18,655 bases of DNA from sequence record NC_074654.1, one strand, 5' to 3'. The position numbers and the translations under genes are program-made. Below are positions 3,911 through 18,655 of this stretch, piece by piece. Within the stretch, counting starts at the first letter, position 1; each line of letters starts with the position of its first letter. The notes beneath the pieces were generated by a model. That model was not told where the DNA came from. It did not search any database and saw only the letters and a list, made by a program, of their open reading frames with translations.

Positions 3911-4345
3911 ATGCCTCGCAGAAAGGTGAGGGAGTACAACCCCTCCGAGAGCGACACCATGAGCCTAAAGGGCACCACCGCGGCCTTGAAACATGCCGAA
4001 TTGGTCCTCGTGGCCTCCCCCACATGCCCGGCGTGCAAGGCCCTATTCAAGTCAAAAAGCGTGAGGTACTACGCCTCTAAGGGCGTCATAACCGTGGTGC
4101 CTCCGGACCGCATGAGGCTGGAGGACATGGGCGAGTGGGTCCTGGACTCTAAGGGCTTGGTCCTCATGGCCTCTACCCCCACCTTTCTAGTTAGGTGCAA
4201 GGACGGCCGCGTCCTGTGGCGCTATAGGGTCCAAGCCGTCGATATATACAATGCCGACGCGGTCATGCAATTGGTCCTCGGCACGTTCAAGAGCCTGGCA
4301 ATTGAGTGCATGCCCGAGGACGCGGCCGGCGTAGAGGGCCTATGA
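3911..4345 (+). CDS. Thioredoxin/glutaredoxin-like CxxC protein
   Basis: ASPTCPACK active-site motif (CxxC at 4025-4036) after a beta-strand, plus downstream STPTF cis-Pro-like motif. Start at ATG 3911 or 3959. Confidence 0.72.
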   Translation: MPRRKVREYNPSESDTMSLKGTTAALKHAELVLVASPTCPACKALFKSKSVRYYASKGVITVVPPDRMRLEDMGEWVLDSKGLVLMASTPTFLVRCKDGRVLWRYRVQAVDIYNADAVMQLVLGTFKSLAIECMPEDAAGVEGL

Positions 4346-4755: not shown

Positions 4756-5466
4756 ATGTTCAAGTTGCTTGACTATCTGTCAAGGCAGTTGAAACCCCTA
4801 AGGATAACCGAGAGGGAGCTCTGCCCGTCCTCAGCACTCTCCGAGTGGCTTGGCCTCGACATAGGGACCCGGTGCATACCGTTGACCCCAGCCGCATACG
4901 GGGAGCTTATCAAGCTATTCAAGCCCTTCGGCAAGGACTACATAGCTGAGGGCTATCTACTGCCCGACACCGTGAGGATTATATCATGCCGCCTCGTGTT
5001 GCTCACGCTAGAGGGGCAGGAGACCCACGAGGTCCTCTACGACGTGAGGACCAATACCTACGGCATAGCCATAGGCGGTGGGTTCAAGCCCCTAGAGGGG
5101 CTGGTGCCGTACACGTGCCCGCCCACCGGCTTCATGGTTGCCGTCGGGACCGTGGTGGACCTGGGGACGCGAGCCAAGCTGGCCATATACCTCCCCAATG
5201 ACCTATACGTCAAGTGGGCCAGGGCCGTCATAAGCAACAACATAGAGGGGGCCCTAGACGTGGTCAAGGTCATGAGGGCCGTGGTCGCGGGTTATGAGAA
5301 GACCGTAGAGGCCCTAAGGAGCCAGCTGGTGAGTGCCTTCGCGGACCAGGCAACCACAATAGAAAGCATATTCCAGCAGTACTTTAGGCCCTTGGAAACG
5401 GCTGAGCGGGTCCTTAGGACCGAAAGGGAAAGGGGCGGAGGCCGGCCGCAACCAGCCCCGCCCTAA
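4756..5466 (+). CDS. 236-aa soluble hypothetical protein with C-terminal helical/coiled-coil region
   Basis: Own promoter, long ORF, typical codon usage; no motif recognised. Confidence 0.85.
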   Translation: MFKLLDYLSRQLKPLRITERELCPSSALSEWLGLDIGTRCIPLTPAAYGELIKLFKPFGKDYIAEGYLLPDTVRIISCRLVLLTLEGQETHEVLYDVRTNTYGIAIGGGFKPLEGLVPYTCPPTGFMVAVGTVVDLGTRAKLAIYLPNDLYVKWARAVISNNIEGALDVVKVMRAVVAGYEKTVEALRSQLVSAFADQATTIESIFQQYFRPLETAERVLRTERERGGGRPQPAPP

Positions 5467-5535
5467 TTTTACCTCGATTCGTAAGATTCCCGGGGCACCA
5501 ATTTTACCACGTTTCGTAAATTACGTCCGGAGTAG
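5467..5535. repeat. Intergenic box cluster 2, between convergent genes
   Basis: TTAC-N8-GTAA at 5469-5484 and 5504-5519; TTAC-GTCCGGA-GTAG at 5521-5535; 5463-5488 matches the start of cluster 4 (around 11696-11721) at 25/26. Confidence 0.9.
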
Positions 5536-5620: not shown

Positions 5621-6376
5621 TTACGGCTGGACGGTGAACTGATAGGTCCCGGGCTGACTCGTGTATATGCCCCAAGCCGGCAGTATTCCCGAGGGAGGCG
5701 AGGACCACGACCCTAGCGATATGGTCACCGGGTTGCCGTTGACGTAGGCCGTGCCGTGGACCACGTATATCCTGTAGGTGGCGCCCGATATAGGCATGCC
5801 GTTATCGCTAGATGCCGGCACGTAGACGTAGTAGAGCAAGCCCGTTATGTTATATGTGTAGGCCGTCAGTAGAACCGCGGCTTGGGCCGGTTTGTAGAGT
5901 ATATAGCCATAGCCGGCCGTCGCGTTAGCCCATACATACACGGTGCCTGAGGTGTCGGTGAAATTGAGCGTAGGCGTGGTGGTCGCTATGCCGAATAGGT
6001 ACAGCTGATAGCCGTTCACGGTCACGTAGGCGTTGCCGTAGGTTATATTGGCCGACTTGACGGAGCCGCCATAGGCGATTATGTCGTAGAGCGACCCAAA
6101 CCCTTGGGCGCTATAGGTGCATGAGCTGGCGCCGCACGTGACATAGCTTGGCACGTACACCAGGGAGGCCGGATTAGCCGGCCCGCTCTTGGGCTGGAGG
6201 GTGCTGACGGGTGCGCTAGTCGTGGTGGTGGTGGGGCTGGGCGAGGGTCCTGTGACCACGGTGCCGGACCTGCCGGTCATGTAGAGCCATATTATGTACC
6301 CCAAGACCGCTATGATTATCAACGCAACGACGGCCATGGCCGCCCTTTCGCGCGACCGATTGTGTATATTGGCCAT
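5621..6376 (-). CDS. Membrane-anchored S/T/P-rich, beta-rich surface protein with class III (pilin-like) signal peptide motif
   Basis: Charged n-region RSRERA|AM then hydrophobic helix; PSPSPTTTTTS linker; four ectodomain N-x-T sequons; Tyr/Thr/Gly-rich body. Confidence 0.8.
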   Translation of the reverse strand: MANIHNRSRERAAMAVVALIIIAVLGYIIWLYMTGRSGTVVTGPSPSPTTTTTSAPVSTLQPKSGPANPASLVYVPSYVTCGASSCTYSAQGFGSLYDIIAYGGSVKSANITYGNAYVTVNGYQLYLFGIATTTPTLNFTDTSGTVYVWANATAGYGYILYKPAQAAVLLTAYTYNITGLLYYVYVPASSDNGMPISGATYRIYVVHGTAYVNGNPVTISLGSWSSPPSGILPAWGIYTSQPGTYQFTVQP

Positions 6377-6422: not shown

Positions 6423-7280
6423 ATGCAATTAAGGGACCTGTTTAGGGCGGCCGCCTCTACGGCCGCGATAGCCTCGGGGCTTGCCGTATTCGCCCTAGAC
6501 CCTACGCCGATAGGCCTATTGGCGGCCCTAATGTACGCCGGATTCGCATACGCCATATTCCAATATTGGGGTCAGCTGGAGAACCCCCTATTGATATTGC
6601 TCTACGTCCTCATGGTGTTTGCCGTGGCCATAAACGTCTACCAGCTGGTGATTTTCGCGGCCGTCGTGATAGCCCTCGTGGTGGCCGCTAAGAGGCCCAG
6701 CCTGGCCACGAGGCCCGGCCCCACCTTGGTCTATCCCCTAAGGCTTGCCGGCCTGGCCGCGGGGATATTGGCCGCGCCCCTAATACTGTGGTATGAGGCC
6801 ATACGGAGGGGCACGTGGCTCTACCGCCTCTATATGGTCCTCGGAGGCATAGGCCTAGTCCTAGCCATGGTGGGGCTGGGCTTCGACGTGAGGCCCATAG
6901 CCTCCCTCCTTGCGACGCCCATGCTGGGCCAATACCTCCAAATTGAGCCCGACGCCTCGCCTCTGTGGTGGCTTGGGGCCATAGGCTGGGAGGAATTCAT
7001 ATCGAGGGCCGCGGGACCCATGGGCAACGCCTTTTGGGTCATATTGCATTTTCCCACGAGGTACCTAATCATAGGCGTGCTTGGGGCCATAGGGGCCGTG
7101 TCCTATATCCAGATAGGCGCCCGGTGGCTGTGGGACACCTATGAGCGGGGAGGGATTATAGGGTCCCTCATAGGCCATGCGACCTACAACGCGGTGCTGT
7201 CCCTATTGATAGAGGTCCCCATTACGCTATGGCCCTTGGTCATTATTGCCGCGATAACATTATACTTCGTCGGGTGCTGA
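6423..7280 (+). CDS. CPBP/Abi (type II CAAX protease-like) intramembrane glutamic/metalloprotease
   Basis: All three family motifs in order in a multi-TM protein: EEFISR (EExxxR, 6990-7007), FWVILH (FxxxH, 7032-7049), HATYN (HxxxN, 7176-7190). Confidence 0.88.
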   Translation: MQLRDLFRAAASTAAIASGLAVFALDPTPIGLLAALMYAGFAYAIFQYWGQLENPLLILLYVLMVFAVAINVYQLVIFAAVVIALVVAAKRPSLATRPGPTLVYPLRLAGLAAGILAAPLILWYEAIRRGTWLYRLYMVLGGIGLVLAMVGLGFDVRPIASLLATPMLGQYLQIEPDASPLWWLGAIGWEEFISRAAGPMGNAFWVILHFPTRYLIIGVLGAIGAVSYIQIGARWLWDTYERGGIIGSLIGHATYNAVLSLLIEVPITLWPLVIIAAITLYFVGC

Positions 7281-7374: not shown

Positions 7375-7761
7375 ATGAGGGCCATAGCTTTGGCATTGGC
7401 TATACTCATGATAGCCATAGCGGCCTACTACCTCATGAACCCTCCCAAGCCCAAGGTGGTGGTCGTGGGCCCGCCTCAGACCGCGACCAATACAAATACA
7501 ACGCCTCCCACGTCAACGCCTCAGACCCCGCCTCCGGCCCAGCAATACATATGCAATTCAACCATGATATCGGTGGACGGCGTGAGGGCTTGCGGAGTTA
7601 TCCAATACCAATACCCCACGGTGGTGGTGGCCGCGCCCGGCTGGCTTGCCGGCAAATTCCAGATAGCGGGTATCCAAGGCGCATGCATATTCACCGTGCA
7701 ATATGGCGAGGTGCTGGTGTCGGGGCCCGGCTGTGTGGTAACGATAAATATCCCCTCGTGA
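7375..7761 (+). CDS. Signal-anchored protein with P/T-rich linker and small Cys-containing beta domain
   Basis: N-terminal hydrophobic helix, PPQTATNTNTTPPTSTPQTPPP linker, 4 Cys; ATATAAAA at 7348-7355. Confidence 0.82.
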   Translation: MRAIALALAILMIAIAAYYLMNPPKPKVVVVGPPQTATNTNTTPPTSTPQTPPPAQQYICNSTMISVDGVRACGVIQYQYPTVVVAAPGWLAGKFQIAGIQGACIFTVQYGEVLVSGPGCVVTINIPS

Positions 7762-8834: not shown

Positions 8835-9065
8835 ATGGACCCGCTCACCTACTTGACGGACCCCACCACGTGGCAGGCTATCATAGACCTGCTGAGGCAG
8901 ATATTTTCCTGGGTCATGTCGGCAAACCCCCTAGCCTTGATTTTTGTCGGGGCCGTCGTGGCATTTATCGGAAAGAGGGTTATCGAGGCCGTGGGCCTCC
9001 TTATACTGATATACGGCGTGGTCAAGCTGGTGGCGCCCCTAATAGGCGTCCACTTGCCTTTTTAA
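8835..9065 (+). CDS. 76-aa small membrane protein (2 TM)
   Basis: ATG 8835 (MDPLTYL..) rather than the track's 8685, which lies inside the previous gene. Confidence 0.78.
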   Translation: MDPLTYLTDPTTWQAIIDLLRQIFSWVMSANPLALIFVGAVVAFIGKRVIEAVGLLILIYGVVKLVAPLIGVHLPF

Positions 9066-9112
9066 TTTACGTCCGGAGTAATTTACGAAACGTGGTAAAA
9101 TACGTCCGGAAT
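9063..9112. repeat. Intergenic box cluster 3
   Basis: TTAC-N7-GTAA 9067-9081, TTAC-N8-GTAA 9083-9098, then degenerate ATAC-GTCCGGA-ATAG; upstream of TATA at 9125-9133. Confidence 0.9.
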
Positions 9113-9150
9113 AGCGGTCAATATTAATATATAGGGGCCTACGGCATGAC

Positions 9151-9753
9151 ATGCGGAAAGTCCCAATACCGCTAGTGTTTGCGGCCATAGCCCTAGCGGC
9201 CGTTACCGTAATGCTTAACGTGGCCATGTCATCTATAGTCACATATCAAGGGACGCCCATAAGCCTCGGAGGCGGCTGGATAGCGGTCAACGCAACGACC
9301 CAAGGCCATGCCTACGTCAACGGCACCATGAGGTACGTCGTGATACCCGTGGTGTCGATATACGGCAAGACCCTGACCAATATCACGGCCGGCAACGTCC
9401 TGCTATTCAGCACCTCTACCGCCAAGTGCGCGGCCGTGGCCTATAACCAATACTACATTGGGTTTCAGCTCTACAACAATAGCGGGCTTTGGACGCCCTT
9501 GGAAGGCCAAGGGTCGTGCCCAGCCCAGATAGGGGCCAACAACGTGACCTATATCACCGGCATAGCCGTGAACGCGACCGGCGTGACGCTATATACGGCC
9601 GCGGGCACTTTCTATATTCCCGCCATATACGTGGGCGCGGGGCAGAATTTCGGGGCCGGCGTAGGCAACTACGTGAACCTGGGCAACGGCTTGGTGGCCG
9701 AATACTACTACTACGTTATCACTAACGGCACGTCGGTCAAGATAACCACCTAG
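9151..9753 (+). CDS. Secreted/virion beta-rich glycoprotein, MRK[IV]PIPL-leader family member 1
   Basis: MRKVPIPL plus hydrophobic helix; 7 N-x-S/T sequons; Tyr/Gly/Asn/Thr-rich. Confidence 0.85.
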   Translation: MRKVPIPLVFAAIALAAVTVMLNVAMSSIVTYQGTPISLGGGWIAVNATTQGHAYVNGTMRYVVIPVVSIYGKTLTNITAGNVLLFSTSTAKCAAVAYNQYYIGFQLYNNSGLWTPLEGQGSCPAQIGANNVTYITGIAVNATGVTLYTAAGTFYIPAIYVGAGQNFGAGVGNYVNLGNGLVAEYYYYVITNGTSVKITT

Positions 9754-9808
9754 TTTTTCCCTACCCTAACTATTTCGGCATAGGTATTTTTAAGGTAGGT
9801 AATTCGGC

Positions 9809-10030
9809 ATGGACATGGAGGGGGACGGGGGAGGGGGGTATTCCGTAAAGCACGCACTTTTTGCCCTATTCCTGGTGGGGCTGGCCCTCATATACGTGGG
9901 GGCCGCCCTAGCCCAGGTTGACGGAGGACTGTCGCTAATGCTGATATTCGTGGGTATATGGGCCGCCATAGCCGCCATAGCGATAGGCGTATTCTCGTTC
10001 ATGGCGAGGGAGGTGCTGGGGTTGCCATGA
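9809..10030 (+). CDS. 73-aa two-TM membrane protein
   Basis: Helical hairpin hydrophobicity; ATGA coupling to the next gene. Confidence 0.75.
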   Translation: MDMEGDGGGGYSVKHALFALFLVGLALIYVGAALAQVDGGLSLMLIFVGIWAAIAAIAIGVFSFMAREVLGLP

Positions 10031-10500
10031 TAGTGGGGATATACAGGTCCAGGCGCAACTTCGGCATGTTTGTGCCCATAAAGCACGGAGGCGTTACCTA
10101 CTACGCCAAGGTCTACCGGAAATTTGTCAAGGGTATAGGCCGGTACGGCCCCCTTGTGGTCGGGCTGTCGTGGGAGACCGATAGGGGCTATCTCGTGACC
10201 GTAGAGGCCGACCGCTATATCGACCTGCCCCACGACATGCTGAGCCGGCTGGAGGTCCTCTATTACCGCCTCTATATATCGTGCGACGGGACGCCCCACG
10301 TGCACCTCATAGCGGGGCCTCCCATGCCCAAGCACAGAGCCCTTAAGTACGCCCGGCCCTACACCGATAGGAGGCACATAAGGCTGAGGCATAGGGTGCC
10401 CTATGCCGGCGTCGTGAGGGTGACCCCGTTGCCTTGCGAGGAAACCCTGGCCGTGGTCAAGGACCCCCTAATCGATAAGGTCGCCTCGCTAGTGCCATGA
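10027..10500 (+). CDS. 157-aa basic protein containing an HUH-like motif (DGTPHVHLI)
   Basis: ATGA-coupled start at 10027; H-V-H at 10297-10305; function call tentative. Confidence 0.75.
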   Translation: MIVGIYRSRRNFGMFVPIKHGGVTYYAKVYRKFVKGIGRYGPLVVGLSWETDRGYLVTVEADRYIDLPHDMLSRLEVLYYRLYISCDGTPHVHLIAGPPMPKHRALKYARPYTDRRHIRLRHRVPYAGVVRVTPLPCEETLAVVKDPLIDKVASLVP

Positions 10501-11126
10501 CCGAGGTAGAGCAACTAGAGGGATTCCTGGAGTGGGACGCGGAGGAATTGGACAGCCCCGATAAGTGGGTGGGTGCGTGGGACTTTGTCAAGGATACACT
10601 CTATGAGTGGCAGAGGCCGGGGACCGACGTGGATAAAGGCATATCGTTCTTCACGGTGATTCAACGGGCTAGGGATATCAGGACCCATGGGGAGGTGGTG
10701 TCGGAGGACCTGGATAGGGCCGTCGGCATGGCCATGTACCACGAGGTGACCCAGGAGCGGGTGCCGATAGATAGGGCGGCCGCGGCCTCCCTTATCAAGG
10801 GGGCTTGGGAGTACCTACATGCCTACGGCGTAGATGAATTCTATGACATAATCAACGCCCTCATGTGGGACCAATACCAGGACCTGAGGCGAGCCTCGGA
10901 CTACTACCTATCGCTATCGCCCGACGCTATCATGCAGGTGTTCAACGTGGCCTATAACCTGGAGCACGGCGTGATTACGCCCAACGAGGCGGCTGAGGCC
11001 GTGAGGGAGATAGCCAGGTCCGAGGGAAAGAGCCCGAGGGCGGCCTATTTCAACGTCTACTACCTCGCCAAGGCCACCGGGGACCCCACGCTAACCGCCC
11101 TCGCCAGGGTCCTATCTAGAAGGTAG
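10497..11126 (+). CDS. 209-aa acidic, mostly alpha-helical hypothetical protein
   Basis: ATGA coupling; Asp/Glu-rich N-terminus. Confidence 0.85.
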   Translation: MTEVEQLEGFLEWDAEELDSPDKWVGAWDFVKDTLYEWQRPGTDVDKGISFFTVIQRARDIRTHGEVVSEDLDRAVGMAMYHEVTQERVPIDRAAAASLIKGAWEYLHAYGVDEFYDIINALMWDQYQDLRRASDYYLSLSPDAIMQVFNVAYNLEHGVITPNEAAEAVREIARSEGKSPRAAYFNVYYLAKATGDPTLTALARVLSRR

Positions 11127-11155
11127 GATTTAAATAACCATATTCATTTTGACCT

Positions 11156-11437
11156 ATGCCCAAATTGGCTAAACGGAGGTTGAATATGTCGATATTGTGC
11201 CGGTTCATATGCGCCCACAAGGGGTCGGTGGCCTACATCTACCCCCATAAGGTGAGGGTGTTCATGGAAAATGATACGCCCGTGGTGGTGGGAGGCGTGA
11301 CCGCCCAAGGCCTGAGGCGCCTCATGAGGCGGCTGGAGCCGGCAATAATGCACACGTTTTTTGACAATAAAAGGGGCCGCGTCTATATGGTAGACATAAA
11401 AACCGCCAAGGAAATATGTCGCAAGTATGTCCGCTAA
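11156..11437 (+). CDS. 93-aa basic protein, possible winged-helix regulator
   Basis: TTTAAATA 27 nt upstream; helix-strand-helix-helix-beta-hairpin pattern ending KRGRVYMVD. Confidence 0.75.
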   Translation: MPKLAKRRLNMSILCRFICAHKGSVAYIYPHKVRVFMENDTPVVVGGVTAQGLRRLMRRLEPAIMHTFFDNKRGRVYMVDIKTAKEICRKYVR

Positions 11438-11699
11438 GAAGGGCGAATACGGCACGGAATTCGTGACGGCCGATAAGCTGGCCTCCCTAGACCTAAACGA
11501 GGTCTACAACATGCTTTCACAGGGCCGCTATGCTGAGGCCTTGCATAGGGTCAAGGCGTACCTCGCCAGGCTGGGCGTATTCGTGTTCAGGGCCGACGTG
11601 ATTCAAGTGGACGTTGAGAGGGGCGTGTTGACGGTCTATGCGGCGTGCGGCGTGAGGATACGGGTCCACGTCCCGACCCAGCACGTGGAAATAGCCTAA
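11427..11699 (+). CDS. 90-aa hypothetical protein
   Basis: 11-bp overlap with the upstream gene; ends directly at box cluster 4. Confidence 0.75.
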   Translation: MSAKKGEYGTEFVTADKLASLDLNEVYNMLSQGRYAEALHRVKAYLARLGVFVFRADVIQVDVERGVLTVYAACGVRIRVHVPTQHVEIA

Positions 11700-11777
11700 T
11701 TTTACCTCGATCCGTAAGATTGATTTTTACCACGTTCTGTAAATTACGTCCGGTGTAATTTACAAATCGAGGTAAGA
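11700..11777. repeat. Intergenic box cluster 4, including a 53-bp imperfect palindrome
   Basis: N8 boxes 11702-11717, 11727-11742, 11760-11775; N7 box 11744-11758; arms 11725-11747 and 11755-11777 are inverted at 19/23. Confidence 0.92.
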
Positions 11778-11800
11778 TTAGCTGGGTCCGGATAGGCGGC

Positions 11801-11869
11801 CAAGTCCCCCAATTGAAAGGCATTAAATTCCCGGGTGTCGGCGTGTGGCAGCCGTTTCTATTTGTAAAG
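11801..11869 (+). repeat. Internal 69-bp inverted repeat, copy A
   Basis: Exact reverse complement of 16302-16370. Confidence 0.97.
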
Positions 11870-11919
11870 TGCGACGGCCTTTAAGGCAAGCAATATAAAT
11901 TCGGACCGTAGTGGGGTCT

Positions 11920-12663
11920 ATGATAATCCCGCTAGCATTGGGGTCGCTAGCCGCCTTGATACTCGTGGCCCTAATGGGGAGCCGCAACATGCTGGTGTAC
12001 ATACTTATAGAGATATTCGTGTCGGGGGCCTTGGCCCTTGCCGGCGTTGCCGCGTCCACATACGCCCTATTCTCGGGTCTATTCATAGCGGCCATGGCCC
12101 TATGGATAATAACCCACGTAGAGGAAAGGGTGGTTGAAAGGGCCGTGGTGACGCTTTTATCGGTGACCCTGGTGTGGGCCTCTAACAACGCGGTGGCCGC
12201 CCAAGCCCTAGGCGCCCTATCCTATGACATAATCGAGCCCTTCTTCGCGGCATTGGCCACGGTGGGGGACGTGGTGCTGGGCGTCTCGGGCTTCGGTGCC
12301 CTATTCGCCTACATGGTCCTATCCAGCCGCATACTGTCGCTAGCTGAGGAAAACCCGCTAGTGGCTATAGGCTATGTCTACCTCGCCAATGCCGTCCTGT
12401 CGGCCTTGGTGGCGCCCATGCCGGACTTTCTCAAGCTTGCCCTAGGCCTGGCCTTGCTGTACCCGCTAGGGAGGGCCATTAGGGGCAACCTTGAGGCCCT
12501 AGCTGAGGTCGCGCCCGTCCTCTACCTCCTGCCTATCCAGCCCTCGGTCCTGGTACAGCTGGGTGCGGTCATGGCCCTCGTGGAATTGGCTATGGCGATA
12601 CTGTCGCGCAAGCACTTGGTGGGGGCCGCCATGTGGGCCGCGGCCTTGCTATTCGTGGCATGA
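11920..12663 (+). CDS. Polytopic membrane protein (about 8 TM)
   Basis: Almost wholly hydrophobic; ATG 11920 is 26 nt after TATAAAT (11894-11900). Confidence 0.82.
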   Translation: MIIPLALGSLAALILVALMGSRNMLVYILIEIFVSGALALAGVAASTYALFSGLFIAAMALWIITHVEERVVERAVVTLLSVTLVWASNNAVAAQALGALSYDIIEPFFAALATVGDVVLGVSGFGALFAYMVLSSRILSLAEENPLVAIGYVYLANAVLSALVAPMPDFLKLALGLALLYPLGRAIRGNLEALAEVAPVLYLLPIQPSVLVQLGAVMALVELAMAILSRKHLVGAAMWAAALLFVA

Positions 12664-13568
12664 GCTCGTTCATACCGGACCTAGCCGAATACTCGGCCCT
12701 TTTAATACTCGCCATTTTCCTGCCCACCTTGGTCTATGGCGCCATGTCCATGTACCTCGGACCGTCGCCTAACCTGTTTATTATCCAGGCAATAGCCCTA
12801 GCGGCCGTGACCGTAAAGCTGGCTAGGGAGAACCTATTTGACGGGGTTCTATTCGCGGCCGGGGCCTCGATATTCACGGCCATAGCCTACCTCGTGCCCG
12901 TCCCCAAGCTATTCATAGAGGGCTTTAGCGCAATATTGGGGCCCTTTATCAACACCCTGCTGAGCACCGTCATAGAGTTCTTCGCCTTCGGCCTCGCCAT
13001 AGGGGCCATTATGGGCCTTGCCGGCATATTCGTGTCGTTCATAGCCGGCATTATCGGCTTTCTGCTAACGGCCTTTATCATGATATTCGCGAGGCTGTCC
13101 AGGCTGGTGTATGAGGCCACCGAGGCGGCCACGTCACTATTCATTAAGGCCGTGCCGGAGGGGGTCGGAGCCGTCCTGGCGCCCTACTTCGGAGGCATTG
13201 TCATAGCGGCCCCCATAGCCGTGGCCATATCGGTCATAGCCGCGGCCGCGGCCCTATGGCTTGGCATGCTCATAGGCATGGCCATAACCGGCGTGCTATT
13301 CCTCAACGTGAACCTGATACTCTACGGCCTGGCCTCGATATTTTCGGCCGTGTTGCTGAGGCCGCAGTCAATTCCCGTCATAGACATGGCCATGGACATA
13401 GCGGCCCTTGTCCTGGTGCCCTACGTGGTGCCCGTCCTGTGGACCGTGGGCTATGCCTTGCTGTCAAGCCGGAGGTACGCCCACCGCGGCATGTACTTTA
13501 TCGGCATATCGGCCGCGGCCGTGGTGGTCTACGCCCAAGCCGCCTCTATCCTCACGGCCATAATTTAA
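12660..13568 (+). CDS. Polytopic membrane protein (about 9 TM), transporter-like
   Basis: ATGA coupling with the previous gene; Gly/Ala-rich TM helices. Confidence 0.82.
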   Translation: MSSFIPDLAEYSALLILAIFLPTLVYGAMSMYLGPSPNLFIIQAIALAAVTVKLARENLFDGVLFAAGASIFTAIAYLVPVPKLFIEGFSAILGPFINTLLSTVIEFFAFGLAIGAIMGLAGIFVSFIAGIIGFLLTAFIMIFARLSRLVYEATEAATSLFIKAVPEGVGAVLAPYFGGIVIAAPIAVAISVIAAAAALWLGMLIGMAITGVLFLNVNLILYGLASIFSAVLLRPQSIPVIDMAMDIAALVLVPYVVPVLWTVGYALLSSRRYAHRGMYFIGISAAAVVVYAQAASILTAII

Positions 13569-13591
13569 ATGGTAGGTGTTTTTTATTACCT

Positions 13592-13897
13592 ATGCATAAC
13601 ATGGTAACAAAAGCCAAGGCCAAGAAGTGCGACGTGGGCGGATACCTAAGGGCCGGCCGGACGCTCTACTACGTAGGCGACCCGAATACCGCGGTCATGT
13701 ACGCCAGGGTGATAGAGGGCCTCATAAGGTCCAGGCGTAGGCCCAAGTGCGCCAAGTGCGGCAGGGCCGTAGAGGGCATGGCCCATGCCGTCGTGTGGGA
13801 CACTTGCGAGGGCATAGAGGGGGCCCTATGCTGGTCGTGCGCCTCTAAGTACCTAAACTACATGGTATGGGACAACGACGGTGCGATAAGGCTATGA
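13592..13897 (+). CDS. Zinc-finger protein (CxxC..CxxC)
   Basis: CAKC and CWSC pairs; TTTAAAT at 13564-13570; start 13592 or 13601 rather than the track's 13256. Confidence 0.78.
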   Translation: MHNMVTKAKAKKCDVGGYLRAGRTLYYVGDPNTAVMYARVIEGLIRSRRRPKCAKCGRAVEGMAHAVVWDTCEGIEGALCWSCASKYLNYMVWDNDGAIRL

Positions 13898-14247
13898 GCG
13901 AGAAGCCGATAAGGGTGTCCACGGTGCCCTATGAGTATCTGCTGTGCATAGCGCTCAAATTGCTGGCCTACTATTCCCGCGGCAACGGGGTCCTTATGCC
14001 CGTGGACACCAAGAAGGTGAACTACGTCCTCCGCAAGGTGGACAAAAACCTAACCGCGACCCAGATCCTGGTGTCCTCGGTCCTGAACTTCCTAAAGCCG
14101 TTCACGGTGCGCGTGGGCCGAAAGAAGCTGGTCCGCCTAAGCCGCGACGCCATACCGGAGTACTTCGCCATGGTCGGCAAGTCTGTCGATTGCCGTGCGT
14201 GGGACCGGAGGCTGGTCGGCCGGGACCCGCGCTTCGGCCTCAAATAA
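13894..14247 (+). CDS. 117-aa basic protein, possible winged-helix regulator
   Basis: ATGA coupling; same apparent secondary-structure order as gene 11156. Confidence 0.75.
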   Translation: MSEKPIRVSTVPYEYLLCIALKLLAYYSRGNGVLMPVDTKKVNYVLRKVDKNLTATQILVSSVLNFLKPFTVRVGRKKLVRLSRDAIPEYFAMVGKSVDCRAWDRRLVGRDPRFGLK

Positions 14248-14276
14248 TCCATTTTTTAATTGGGCTTATTTCCTAT

Positions 14277-15038
14277 ATGCGCAAGATCCCAATTCCGCTA
14301 ATCGCGGCGGCCGTATTCCTGTCGGCCGTGACCATATACATAACCATAACCATACAGACCATACTGTCCTATGACCCCACATATGTCAGTTTCAACGGCA
14401 CTAACTATATCGTGACCGTGTCGGGCTCTAGCCCCTACGACACCTTTCCGCCCATGTACATAGACGTGGTCAATATCTCACAGGTGTATACGGTGACCTC
14501 GATAGGCTATGGGTCCTCCGACACTTGGTATACATGCCAGGCTGGCGGGTGCGACATAGGCCTCACGATTGTCAACTTCCCCAGCATGCCCAATGCGACG
14601 GCCCTAAATCCCAAGTCCGGCGTGTACGTCTACAAGATGAACACCGGCAACGTGGTGCTGGTGTACGGCACGGCCACCACCTCCGGAGGCACGTCGGGCT
14701 ATATCATATGGCCCTACGTCCTTGTCGCGACGTCCGGGTCGGAGTACTTCTTCATCCTGGCGACCCAGGCACAGACACCGGCCTCTACCATATGCTCAAT
14801 GTCCCCCTTCAGCACGGCCGGCACGGCCGTTATCCAGGCGAGGGACGCCTACTATGTGTGTCCCCTCGCCTCGTGGTCCTCAGGCACGTCCTCCCTTGTC
14901 AAGACCGGATACGTGTCCGTGGGGGCCGGCACGTCGCTAGGCTATAAGGAGATCTATTCCTACTCGTGGGGGTCGATAATCCTACACCCGTGGTACTACG
15001 TGACGTCTAGCGCCTATATCGTGGGCAAGCCAAATTAA
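14277..15038 (+). CDS. Secreted/virion beta-rich protein, MRK[IV]PIPL-leader family member 2 (fibre/adhesin candidate)
   Basis: MRKIPIPLIAAAVFL start at 14277, not the track's 13944; S/T/Y/G-rich; 3 sequons; 4 Cys. Confidence 0.85.
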   Translation: MRKIPIPLIAAAVFLSAVTIYITITIQTILSYDPTYVSFNGTNYIVTVSGSSPYDTFPPMYIDVVNISQVYTVTSIGYGSSDTWYTCQAGGCDIGLTIVNFPSMPNATALNPKSGVYVYKMNTGNVVLVYGTATTSGGTSGYIIWPYVLVATSGSEYFFILATQAQTPASTICSMSPFSTAGTAVIQARDAYYVCPLASWSSGTSSLVKTGYVSVGAGTSLGYKEIYSYSWGSIILHPWYYVTSSAYIVGKPN

Positions 15039-15059
15039 TAAATTTCCCATATTTTCTAC

Positions 15060-16007
15060 ATGCGCAAGATACCCATACCGCTAATAATAGCGGCCGTATT
15101 CCTAGTTGCGGTGGCAATATACATAACCTACACGGTGAACACGGCCGCACCGCCTATATGGACGTCGGCCGCTAACCAGACCATAAACCTGGTGACGCCC
15201 CAGACATATTTCATCTACGGCACGGAGTTCAACAGGGTGGTGGACGGCAAGTCCTTGACCACGGTGAGCCAGCTGGGCTCTAGGCTGGCCACGATAGCCG
15301 TGAACAACACGGCCTATATACCGTGGATAATTGTAAGCGAGTCCAAGGTGTCGGGCTCTATAGGCTCACCCGATATAGGTGTGGGTAGTGCCACGATTAA
15401 TCTGCCCATGCTTCTCGCCATGGCCTACAACGAGAGCCAGCTGGCCAGCATGTACGGCACTAACACCATATGTGTCACGATAAACGGGACGTCGGTGACC
15501 CTCCAGGTCAACCCCTCGGGGGCGCCCGGGTATATCGCGCTAGGCTATGTATTCAAGAACTCTTACAATTATCTATTCGGTCTAGAGGTTGAATACTACT
15601 ACGTGGGCAAGGTCGTGACGGCCAACGGCTTTACTTGGTACATGTACCTACTCGCACCCATGGCCGGAGCCGCGACGGGCAAGATAACGCTATCAACCTA
15701 CGCCTGTAGTTACACCACGTCCTCAGCAATACCGACCGAGGTCACGCAGGTCGGCGTGTCGGGCTATCTACCTTATGTAACTATTTATTATAATTCGGGT
15801 TATTCGGGTTATACAAACTTTAATTTCCAATTCACCCAGGTCGCTAACGTGACCACAAGCACCACGCCCGTGTCGGTGCCGGCTGGGTCGGGCTCTACCA
15901 TATATGGGCCGGGCACAAACCCCATGGTGCTGGGCGTCGCTCTGCCAATGGAGGCCTACGCTTTCCCGGTTAATAACGGTCCGGTGCAAATAACCTATAG
16001 CCCGTAA
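15060..16007 (+). CDS. Secreted/virion beta-rich protein, MRK[IV]PIPL-leader family member 3 (fibre/adhesin candidate)
   Basis: MRKIPIPLIIAAVFL; 5 sequons; TTAATAAA 25 nt upstream. Confidence 0.87.
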   Translation: MRKIPIPLIIAAVFLVAVAIYITYTVNTAAPPIWTSAANQTINLVTPQTYFIYGTEFNRVVDGKSLTTVSQLGSRLATIAVNNTAYIPWIIVSESKVSGSIGSPDIGVGSATINLPMLLAMAYNESQLASMYGTNTICVTINGTSVTLQVNPSGAPGYIALGYVFKNSYNYLFGLEVEYYYVGKVVTANGFTWYMYLLAPMAGAATGKITLSTYACSYTTSSAIPTEVTQVGVSGYLPYVTIYYNSGYSGYTNFNFQFTQVANVTTSTTPVSVPAGSGSTIYGPGTNPMVLGVALPMEAYAFPVNNGPVQITYSP

Positions 16008-16040
16008 CCGAATATTTTTTCTACCTATCAATTTTCTAGT

Positions 16041-16181
16041 ATGTCTCGGAGCGTCCATAGGCTGACTTGGGGCATTGCGGTAGTGCTGGCGATTGCTGGC
16101 CTCCTTGGCTATATCAGCCCGGCCAATGCCGCCCTCCTTGGCCTCCTAGTGGCCGGTGCCGGTGAGCTCTTTGAGGAATAG
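16041..16181 (+). CDS. 46-aa two-TM microprotein MSRSVHRLTWGIAVVLAIAGLLGYISPANAALLGLLVAGAGELFEE (not in ORF track)
   Basis: ATG preceded by ATTTTCTAGT, like the context of gene 15060; clean helical hairpin. Confidence 0.75.
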   Translation: MSRSVHRLTWGIAVVLAIAGLLGYISPANAALLGLLVAGAGELFEE

Positions 16182-16201
16182 GCCGGCCTAACCCACCCAT
16201 T

Positions 16202-16238
16202 TTTTACCACGTTTCGTAAATTACGGGTCGAGGTAAAT
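16202..16238. repeat. Intergenic box cluster 5a
   Basis: N8 boxes 16204-16219 and 16221-16236 joined by CGTAAATTACG; 16202-16224 identical to 5502-5524. Confidence 0.92.
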
Positions 16239-16301
16239 TACCGACCTGCCCGTAGAATACCCCTCGCTTTGGGGCCTCGCCTATCCGGCAAGGCGGAGGC
16301 C

Positions 16302-16370
16302 CTTTACAAATAGAAACGGCTGCCACACGCCGACACCCGGGAATTTAATGCCTTTCAATTGGGGGACTTG
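16302..16370 (-). repeat. Internal 69-bp inverted repeat, copy B
   Basis: Exact reverse complement of 11801-11869. Confidence 0.97.
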
Positions 16371-16393
16371 TCCGGCCTCCTGGAGCCCGTCAT

Positions 16394-16430
16394 TTTTACC
16401 TCGATTCGTAAATTACGAAACGTGATAAGA
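16394..16430. repeat. Intergenic box cluster 5b
   Basis: N8 box 16396-16411 and near-perfect box 16413-16428 (ends ATAA). Confidence 0.9.
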
Positions 16431-16526
16431 TTCAGATATGTAAAATACATATTTCGGCGTGCCGGGCTTTCGGCGTGGCTAGTTGAAAGCTGAGCGGTAC
16501 CCTACATAGTTGAAAGACGTGGTTCA

Positions 16527-16565
16527 TTACACCCGTCGTAAATTACGGGGCCGATAAGTTTAAAT
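16527..16565 (+). promoter_or_regulatory. Promoter of the right-terminal operon with two N7 boxes directly upstream of the TATA
   Basis: TTAC-N7-GTAA 16527-16541, TTAC-N7-ATAA 16543-16557, TTTAAAT 16559-16565, ATG at 16587. Confidence 0.7.
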
Positions 16566-16586
16566 TTACCGGAATTTCCATAACCC

Positions 16587-16877
16587 ATGGCCAAACCAAA
16601 AGTCCACGGAAACTACCCCCGCGAACTGAACACCGTATTCCGGAATACGGGGGTAATGGTCAAGTGCCCCAAGTGCGGGGAGGAGGGCGCGCTAAGGGTC
16701 CACGTAGGCGGCTATCTCGTGGTGAGGCATTGGCACGGTGGGACCCACATGGTGCCGGCCGACCAGGAGGCCCAGGTCCTTAAGGGCGTAATAGACAGCC
16801 TGGTGAGTTTCAAGAAGGTCCTAGATGACGCCATAGCCACTATCCAAGGCGTCGTTGACAAGGCGGGGCATGACTAA
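16587..16877 (+). CDS. Zinc-finger protein (CPKCG..YLVVRH..H) with C-terminal helix
   Basis: CxxC followed by His residues, a pattern common in crenarchaeal mobile-element proteins. Confidence 0.8.
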   Translation: MAKPKVHGNYPRELNTVFRNTGVMVKCPKCGEEGALRVHVGGYLVVRHWHGGTHMVPADQEAQVLKGVIDSLVSFKKVLDDAIATIQGVVDKAGHD

Positions 16878-18196: not shown

Positions 18197-18531
18197 GGTG
18201 GCTGACCCACATTATATGGGGCGTCGCGGCCCTCTCCTTTTTCTCCGTGGACCTGACTGTGGCGGCCGGCATGTCCTTTATCCATACGGCCTTGACCGAC
18301 GTATTCGGCCATACGGGACTACACCGCAATAGGTACCACGACATACTCGCCATATTTTGGGCCGTCCTAATCGCGGGACTCATTAAGAACCCCGCCTTTA
18401 TTGTCCTGGGTCCTTTGCACATAATATTGGACCTAATTTCTCCTGGGAGGTGGGGCGTGAATTGGGCCTACAATTCCCTATTCATAGCCTTGGCCGCGGC
18501 CCTATTAATGGCGAGGGGCGTGCCGATATAA
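18193..18531 (+). CDS. YdjM/DUF457-like membrane-bound metal-dependent hydrolase
   Basis: N-terminal THxxWG, TD..GH..HR..YH and LHIILD.ISPG motifs in a multi-TM protein match the family pattern TH..PD.D..HR..THS..H..LD. Confidence 0.72.
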   Translation: MRWLTHIIWGVAALSFFSVDLTVAAGMSFIHTALTDVFGHTGLHRNRYHDILAIFWAVLIAGLIKNPAFIVLGPLHIILDLISPGRWGVNWAYNSLFIALAAALLMARGVPI

Positions 18532-18554
18532 ATTACGTGGACCTGTAAAAAACC
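18530..18554. repeat. Box cluster 6 abutting the right ITR
   Basis: N8 box 18533-18548; 25-bp exact inverted match to 2584-2608. Confidence 0.9.
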
Positions 18555-18655
18555 CTATTATATAGGGAGCTGAAAGCCGTACATATTCCTCACCTATATG
18601 TGGGGAATTGTCGGGGTTCAACCTCGGGAGGGTTGAATCCCGAGGGACCTGAATC
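18553..18655 (-). repeat. Right inverted terminal repeat (103 bp)
   Basis: Reverse complement of 74-176. Confidence 0.97.

Follow-up and report, generated by a model that had tools for sequence, protein, structure and literature searches.

The stretch of DNA analysed here (the window, 18,655 bp, sequence record NC_074654.1) is 100% identical to MT047590.1, the complete genome of TSPV1 (Thermoproteus spherical piliferous virus 1), so that a guess made in a preliminary description of the sequence turned out to be correct. In the annotation of MT047590.1, all 31 of the 31 genes are labelled 'hypothetical protein'. Three of these genes, GP13, GP23 and GP24, code for proteins that begin with nearly the same N-terminal leader. 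The leader, the genes that carry it and the membrane proteins that may act together with it are the subject of this study (Table 1).

The major component of the TSPV1 filaments is reportedly GP24, a glycosylated protein of 35 kDa. A review describes these filaments as flexible and 3 nm thick, reaching lengths of 500 nm, with a mean of seven per virion, and according to another paper glycosylation is thought to give them stability. Filaments have been reported for TSPV1 only, and the isolates PSV, PSV2 and TTSV1 have been described without them. VP1-3 have been described as the major structural proteins of the enveloped globulovirus virions. Annotation is missing for almost all globulovirus proteins, and in one study 98% of them were found to be without database matches.

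Table 1 Features of the TSPV1 genome that are discussed in the text. Positions are those of the window.
Feature	Position	Strand	Description
GP13	9151-9753	+	200 aa; leader MRKVPIPLVFAAIALAAVTVML (about 9151-9225), followed by a body rich in beta structure that has 7 N-x-S/T sequons and 2 Cys
GP23	14277-15038	+	253 aa; leader MRKIPIPLIAAAVFLSAVTIYITITI (about 14277-14354), then the conserved motif SY[DN]PxYxxFNGT
GP24	15060-16007	+	315 aa; leader MRKIPIPLIIAAVFLVAVAIYITYTV (about 15060-15143), then the junction VNT-x-x-PP-[IV]-W
AT-rich, TATA-like stretch	14251-14276	+	directly upstream of the GP23 start; common to the GP24 upstream region (15034-15059)
GP7	6423-7280	+	285 aa; polytopic membrane protein, conserved in all globulovirus genomes checked
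GP19 and GP20	11911-13568	+	two conserved membrane proteins (multi-pass) of the structural module; GP19 is homologous to coat protein VP2
GP3	3959-4345	+	128 aa; CPAC motif
GP6	5621-6376	-	single-pass, beta-rich, Ser/Thr/Pro-rich stalk, N-terminal anchor of a different kind
GP8	7375-7761	+	single-pass, beta-rich, Ser/Thr/Pro-rich stalk, N-terminal anchor of a different kind
GP16	10497-11126		homologues in related contigs match Pfam PF22056 (ORF239-like)
GP26	16587-16877		homologues in related contigs match Pfam PF22415 (PSV_ORF131-like domain)
Inverted repeat, 127 nt	11755-11881 and 16290-16416		intergenic; arms 87% complementary
Intergenic repeat family	2584-2674, 5458-5534, 9048-9113, 11695-11781, 16197-16242, 16389-16432, 16526-16550, 18529-18554	both	units such as TTTTACCACGTTTCGTAAATTAC, GTAATTTACG
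Terminal inverted repeats	74-176 and 18553-18655		103 nt, perfect
Right end of the genome	18187-18655		genome ends 124 nt past GP31

The N-termini of GP13, GP23 and GP24 are MRKVPIPLVFAAIAL, MRKIPIPLIAAAVFL and MRKIPIPLIIAAVFL, respectively. As had been stated in the preliminary description, all three conform to MRK[IV]PIPL, which is followed by an uncharged stretch of 19-23 residues. A degenerate DNA pattern for M-R-K-[IV]-P-I-P-L matched exactly these three starts, with an expectation of 0.00 from 200 shuffles. Pairwise BLASTP similarity is confined to the N-terminus: GP23 and GP24 align over residues 1-28 only (22 of 28 identical, 79%, E=8e-10), GP13 and GP23 over residues 1-41 only (E=7e-7), and GP13 and GP24 over residues 1-22 only. 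When alignments of the body classes (see below) were compared profile to profile, the leader was again the sole part that aligned, and after its removal no pair of classes exceeded a probability of 3% in hhalign. That the bodies lack obvious identity to each other, which had been noted before, thus holds at the profile level. Hidden homology between the classes was rejected on this basis, and only a link between GP24 and VP3 remains, which was found with Foldseek. All three bodies have few charged residues, 56-59% of S/T/N/G/Y/V, 3-7 N-x-S/T sequons and 2-4 Cys.

Among the first 22 codons of GP23 and GP24, 18 specify the same residue, and 6 of these 18 do so by different codons; in the leader genes of PSV2, most of the identical residues use different codons. 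The divergence at synonymous positions, which had already been pointed out, is therefore real, and it follows that selection acts on the leader peptide and that the similarity is not due to recent copying. Recent copying or gene conversion is ruled out by this divergence, the exception being an identical tandem pair of GP23 genes in the metagenomic contig L089. A nucleotide-level or RNA element behind the leader was also rejected, as there is no Rfam match and the conservation is at the codon level. The TATA-like stretches in front of GP23 and GP24 are part of a 95-nt direct repeat with 76% identity, which suggests that each of the two genes may have its own promoter and a leaderless mRNA.

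Leader-bearing genes across the Globuloviridae

The other three isolates (PSV, PSV2 and TTSV1) were scanned in six frames for the leader. In 11 genomes and contigs, a total of 38 leader-bearing genes with 32 distinct leaders was found, and each of the sequences examined (PSV, PSV2, TTSV1, TSPV1-like metagenomic genomes and one distant lineage) has between two and five of them. The 32 distinct leaders define a core, [KR]-x-P-x-[PA]-[LM]-x-x-A-[AGL], in which conservation is 100% for K/R (position 1), the first Pro (position 3) and Ala (position 9). Of the 32 leaders, 27 keep the second Pro, which is replaced by Ala or Ser in several orthologues; the 'fixed P-I-P' that had been described is thus fixed in its first Pro only. 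The basic tip consists of 1-6 residues, usually MRK, and the uncharged run which follows has 19-23 residues in all but one leader.

Diverse subunits which have one conserved hydrophobic N-terminus and a very short basic tip resemble pilins, and the leader could be taken for a class III (type IV pilin-like) signal that would be processed by a PibD/FlaK-type peptidase and would place the hydrophobic N-terminus in the core of the filament. However, there is no Gly/Ala in front of the hydrophobic segment: in 32 of 32 distinct leaders, the run starts directly after K/R, which bears out the earlier remark that the G/A at -1 of class III signals is missing. Ten TSPV1 proteins were scanned against Pfam, prepilin-peptidase families included, and gave no match. 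Foldseek found no pilin for the GP24 model, and a 3-nm filament made of a 30-kDa all-beta subunit would seem too thin for a pilin-type helical core. We consider a class III signal to be very improbable.

The leader-bearing genes of the isolates code for VP3, gp30 and gp31 in PSV, for VP3, gp23 and gp28 in PSV2, and for gp23, gp24, gp26 and gp31 in TTSV1. The initial count of three proteins applies to TSPV1, but relatives have up to five. The coat protein VP3 (annotated in PSV and PSV2) is one of the leader-bearing body classes; the others are GP13, GP23, GP24, PSV gp31 and TTSV1 gp23. With three to four leader genes in each of the non-piliated viruses PSV, PSV2 and TTSV1, a coat protein among them, the tie between leader and filaments that had been proposed has to be given up. 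The related claim that the three TSPV1 proteins are the best filament candidates stands for GP24, whose role as filament protein is said to have been published already, but the leader is not a filament-specific device. GP13, GP23 and GP24 carry the common leader and, by this feature, belong to what we call the Globuloviridae leader-bearing virion glycoprotein group. In PSV, 'paralogous genes' are marked by colour in the family profile from the international committee for virus taxonomy (ICTV), and these may include some of the leader genes.

For the GP23 class alone, orthologues can be detected by sequence in each of the four isolates (TTSV1 gp26, PSV2 gp23, PSV gp30), and GP23 shares 30% identity with TTSV1 gp26 over the full length. 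The GP13 class occurs in TSPV1-like genomes only. When compared to VP3 by hhalign, it gives a probability of 85% with the leader included, and nothing is left without it. A search of 5.8 billion proteins retrieved 55 orthologues of GP24, all of them at least 47% identical to it; they sit on metagenomic contigs, several of which have a size of 17-22 kb. No sequence-detectable relatives of the GP24 and GP13 bodies were found outside TSPV1-like genomes.

In the contigs that were fetched (L007-L009, L089-L092), the leader is kept on every class. Leader genes are duplicated and turn over. Tandem pairs of GP24 paralogues were found in L007 (10001-11919), L008 (9028-10936), L091 (9001-10930) and L092 (4647-6564), with variable regions that differ between the copies, and two tandem copies of GP23, which are identical, in L089 (8429-9982). 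Classes have also been gained or lost: a VP3-class gene is present in L089 and L091 and absent from TSPV1, and GP13 is absent from L089. Five leader genes are found in L091. The tandem copies of GP24 and GP23 suggest that the surface modules diversify rapidly. The PSV-like metagenome contigs L119 and L148 have two GP23-class copies each.

In PSV, PSV2 and the 22-kb contig L091 (13116-14246), the VP3-class gene directly follows the homologue of GP31, the gene next to which the TSPV1 genome ends. The piliated TSPV1 is thus without one of the three 'major structural proteins', unless GP13 or GP24 substitutes for it.

A distant lineage, represented by the 18.9 kb contig L188, was found via its GP7 homologue. 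It has degenerate leaders (MRLPIPWLLAL, MRIPWAWLLAI and MSRLPISALIAAL) on three genes directly upstream of a VP2/GP20/VP1/GP2/GP7 block. The co-occurrence of leader and GP7 in the distant lineage rests on this contig, as L093-L095 are too short. L188 also codes (16034-16573, minus strand) for a protein that matches Phage_integrase (PF00589), in a family which has been described as non-integrating.

A pattern search for the leader in host and virus genomes, as had been suggested in the preliminary description, was performed and yielded nothing genuine beyond the globuloviruses. In 185,579 bacterial and archaeal species genomes (one genome per species), the pattern [KRNSHQ]-IPIPLI-x-AA has 57 matches, with about 59 expected as estimated from base frequencies. 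None of the 57 is in Thermoproteales and none represents a comparable N-terminal anchor; this is the reach of a single stringent pattern, with degenerate host versions falling outside it. With matches at chance level and none in Thermoproteales, a host-encoded sorting signal is ruled out at this stringency. In IMG/VR, TTSV1 is the sole genuine match, and in a metagenome collection 27 of 98 matches are genuine, all of them in GP23- or GP24-class genes (recurrent short open reading frames and one unrelated bacterial-type protein were set aside), so that a wider viral distribution was rejected as well. A look-alike leader in L132 was discarded because this is an unrelated contig with 43% guanine plus cytosine. 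The leader is therefore a property of globuloviruses alone and is not taken from a host sorting pathway, at least as far as a pattern of this stringency can show.

Function of the leader and its candidate partners

The leader is the only part that is conserved between body classes and across the family, and it is under selection at the peptide level. Signal peptides normally evolve faster than mature domains. GP6 and GP8 use other anchors, and the leader motif is therefore not needed for membrane insertion as such. The conservation of a sequence that is expected to evolve fast, together with the different anchors of GP6 and GP8, argues for a sequence-specific role within the membrane. On balance, we read the leader as a Globuloviridae-specific signal-anchor, that is, a virus-specific membrane determinant on fast-evolving virion surface proteins. 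All isolates have homologues of GP6, and TTSV1 has two regions that match it.

As a signal-anchor, the basic tip and the uncharged run would insert the proteins via the host Sec/signal recognition particle (SRP) route such that the N-terminus stays inside and the body comes to lie outside, and after envelopment the glycosylated bodies would decorate the surface of the virion. Within the membrane, the leader would make a sequence-specific contact with a conserved viral membrane protein (VP2/GP19, GP20, GP2 or GP7), and this contact would either select the proteins for the virion, as a docking step for envelope incorporation, or have them processed. GP7 is a candidate for the partner and for an intramembrane hydrolase; GP19 and GP20 may be alternative partners within the membrane. 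The ectodomains would be free to diverge as host-contact modules, and in TSPV1 one of these modules, GP24, would polymerise into the 3-nm filaments.

For GP24, the body of which has 5 sequons and 2 near-invariant Cys, an AlphaFold2 model was computed with 45 orthologues (predicted local distance difference test (pLDDT) 76.8, predicted template modelling score (pTM) 0.77). From about residue 45 onwards the model is all-beta, with a strand (310-314) at its end; residues 1-41 are unplaced. Among the orthologues, conservation is high in residues 26-60, with V26, N27, P31, P32 and W34 invariant, and in the last 35 residues; variable positions are found at 101-110, 241-250 and, less so, at 211-230. 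Foldseek comparison of the model to PDB gave a best E of 0.03 with a template modelling score (TM-score) below 0.2 and matched neither a donor-strand nor a type IV pilin; the GP24 sequence profile has no match in PDB. In BFVD, the model found, besides itself, only VP3 from PSV (E=3.7e-6, probability 1.0, TM-score 0.44/0.53, 15% identity). From this fold match it follows that GP24 and VP3 may be very divergent paralogues, and, as judged from the model, an ordinary surface protein of globuloviruses may have given rise to the filament protein.

A filament of 3 nm built from a roughly 30-kDa all-beta subunit implies a single-file polymer. As a filament hundreds of nm in length cannot expose a hydrophobic 23-mer on each of its subunits, the GP24 leader would have to be lost or buried, most plausibly by cleavage at the invariant V-N-T that precedes variable residues and P-P. 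Host signal peptidase I or GP7 might make this cut, and the computed data do not discriminate between them. The conserved segment of residues 29-60, which follows the transmembrane region, is unplaced in the monomer model; this is compatible with strand exchange but is no evidence for it.

Several points weigh against the signal-anchor. With a total of about 28 residues, the leader also fits an ordinary cleaved archaeal signal peptide, and the junction that follows the transmembrane region of GP24 (V-N-T) looks like a signal-peptidase site, although those of the GP23 and VP3 classes do not do so consistently. For the contact within the membrane there are several candidate partners (those named above) instead of one. 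Within genomes, no covariation of leader residues among paralogues was found, and Pro7 is changed to Ala in single paralogues: the change affects both paralogues in L090 but only one in L091 and in L092, so that covariation was rejected as a sign of a shared partner.

It has thus to be considered whether the leader is an ordinary Sec signal peptide that is cut by host signal peptidase I, its similarity reflecting the ancestry of paralogues with no sequence-specific role. The basic tip, the hydrophobic core and the polar junction are those of a Sec signal, the total length of about 25-30 residues agrees with one, and the V-N-T junction of GP24 fits the -3/-1 rule; because the GP24 model resembles VP3 from PSV, at least two of the classes may be true paralogues. 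However, the bodies have diverged beyond profile detection while the R, P and A positions are 100% conserved across about 11 genomes. A hydrophobic run of 19-23 residues has the length of a transmembrane anchor, whereas the h-region of Sec signals has about 7-15 residues, and no uniform peptidase site is found at the junctions in the GP23 and VP3 classes. We thus regard a plain Sec signal as unlikely and uphold the earlier view that the leader looks unlike a generic one.

All four isolates have an orthologue of GP7, and so do the related contigs wherever they cover the region. In 15 sequences, down to 21% identity, W183, G185, E190, E191, R195, N202, H209, P211, I229, W235, G244, H252, Y255 and N256 are invariant. 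The motifs EExxxR, [FW]xxxH and HxxxN follow each other in this order, are invariant, and lie in helical stretches of the model, which is all-helical (pLDDT 85, pTM 0.83). This order of motifs is said to define the CPBP/Rce1-type proteases. Motifs 1 and 2 are spaced by 19 residues in GP7; the corresponding spacing in archaeal Rce1 is roughly 33.

An exhaustive hidden Markov model (HMM) search with GP7 among 1.84 billion representatives yielded 16 matches at E<=0.001; 13 of these reach E<=1e-10, and none of the matches has a Pfam label. When GP7, its 3 isolate orthologues and 10 further members were compared to Pfam PF02517 and the NCBIfam CPBP models, there was no match at E<=1 to 10. No match was found among PDB sequences with phmmer and both family profiles, and a word-indexed profile search of 5.8 billion proteins returned no cellular relatives and no Pfam labels. 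Foldseek comparison of the model to PDB, which is weak on all-helical membrane proteins, gave insignificant matches (best E 0.23), and those listed are transporters or otherwise unrelated proteins, with no Rce1 among them. The assignment of GP7 as an 'intact CPBP protease' in the preliminary description was thus overstated, and the motif triad is what remains of it. GP7 is a conserved polytopic protein with hydrolase-like invariant polar residues, and it may plausibly be an intramembrane protease. The 'thioredoxin' of the same description, GP3, has the CPAC motif and, as best matches, thioredoxin 3hz4 (E=0.25) and MauD (E=0.064), which are non-significant, the MauD match being far below its cut-off.

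If GP7 were a CPBP-like intramembrane protease, it could read the leader, and cleavage would mature interchangeable fibre subunits that polymerise by strand donation. Such a route would be parallel to the protease-mediated strand exchange in type V pili. It would agree with the invariant order of the three motifs, with the helix-breaking Pro at the start of the transmembrane segment, which may suit a substrate of an intramembrane protease, and with the highly conserved post-transmembrane segment and C-terminal strand of GP24, the former being unplaced in the model. There is also precedent for a CPBP member that removes an N-terminal membrane-associated leader, namely MroQ, which does so from AgrD in Staphylococcus aureus. 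The match to CPBP families and folds is missing, however, in spite of a model with a pLDDT of 85, and the motif spacing is shorter than in Rce1. The leader is found equally on filament-less viruses and on the coat protein VP3, and no donor-strand pilin was matched by the fold of GP24. Furthermore, the conserved motif is at the N-terminal (inner) end of the transmembrane segment, and a cut at this end would not release the ectodomain. A check for co-occurrence of the leader with a CPBP gene had been proposed earlier. GP7 was indeed found in each globulovirus genome that was checked, also in the distant lineage whose leaders are degenerate, but this is explained by common descent and does not count as independent evidence. 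We consider this model, with processing of the leader by GP7 and polymerisation by strand donation, to be conceivable though doubtful. A full virus-encoded route of sorting and maturation, where GP7 reads the leader, releases or licenses the changing surface modules and triggers end-to-end polymerisation of GP24 by strand exchange, appears quite unlikely to us.

Repeats, termini and further genes of TSPV1

The 127-nt inverted repeat flanks a block which extends from GP19 to GP25 and includes the VP2 homologue, GP20-22, GP23, GP24 and GP25. Five TSPV1-like contigs (L007, L008, L009, L091, L092) have both arms, conserved in the corresponding relative positions. The repeat may delimit a structural cassette that can be inverted or exchanged, or it may represent paired regulatory regions. 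In TTSV1, the orthologue of GP23 is on the opposite strand.

The intergenic repeat family has one copy 40-100 nt upstream of GP13. When translated, the repeat corresponds to the recurring '...RNLRNVVK...' of spurious open reading frames. The family has no Rfam match. The repeat probably serves as a promoter or terminator element, or else a viral regulator binds to it.

The left arm of the terminal inverted repeats begins 73 nt inside the left end of the sequence, while the right arm reaches the final base. Either about 73 nt may be missing from the right terminus as deposited, or the two ends may differ by nature. GP16 and GP26, which are un-annotated in the GenBank record, can be related to PF22056 and PF22415, respectively; structures have been solved for few globulovirus folds, these two among them.

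Related systems and significance

The closest relatives of the TSPV1 leader proteins are VP3 of PSV and PSV2 together with its unannotated neighbours PSV gp30/gp31, PSV2 gp23/gp28 and TTSV1 gp23/24/26/31, which are virion proteins of the same family with the same leader. TSPV1 differs from these viruses in being without a VP3-class gene and in being the only one with reported filaments. A similar arrangement is found in signal-anchor (type II) glycoproteins such as the neuraminidase of influenza A, where a conserved N-terminal tail and transmembrane anchor are combined with a diverging head. The neuraminidase tail and anchor are conserved across subtypes, and in such viruses the anchor aids incorporation into the virion. 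There is no homology, however, the host is an archaeon and the membrane is different, and GP24 cannot keep its anchor exposed in a filament.

Type IV pilins and archaellins, with their class III signals, likewise have one conserved hydrophobic N-terminus on divergent subunits that enter a dedicated pathway. TSPV1 differs from these systems by the missing G/A at -1, by having no peptidase or assembly ATPase, by its all-beta bodies and by a filament that is too thin. Thin, very stable and often glycosylated filaments of beta-rich subunits are known as type V pili (Bacteroidota FimA/Mfa1), as the 'threads' of Sulfolobus acidocaldarius and as the AbpA bundling pili of Pyrobaculum calidifontis. Their subunits are membrane-tethered or exported and then undergo strand exchange, in type V pili after a cut by a protease. 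The GP24 model differs from them in having no similarity in PDB. With the CPBP/Rce1-like intramembrane glutamic proteases (PF02517), GP7 shares the three ordered motifs; it differs in having no profile or fold match, in its shorter motif spacing and in its isolation as a clade, with about 16 cluster representatives out of the 1.84 billion.

The genome of TSPV1 and the role of GP24 have been published, and signal-anchors with conserved tails are of a known kind. In the literature other than the primary isolate papers, we found no mention of a family-specific leader, with an invariant Pro and Ala, that is common to seemingly unrelated surface modules of an archaeal virus family.

As a mark of the surface-exposed virion proteins across the family, the leader provides a simple rule by which candidates for host recognition and for filaments can be picked in any globulovirus genome or metagenomic contig. 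Its distribution shows that surface modules are duplicated and exchanged while the anchor stays fixed. It is a handle on the question of how proteins are chosen for the envelope of an archaeal virus, and it bears on how a protein of 30 kDa that is initially in the membrane becomes a very stable 3-nm filament. If GP7 were the processing enzyme, a virus-specific branch would be added to the intramembrane proteases. If, in addition, strand exchange were to occur, there would be a virus-borne route of pilus assembly in which both the fold of the subunit and the branch of intramembrane proteases are new.

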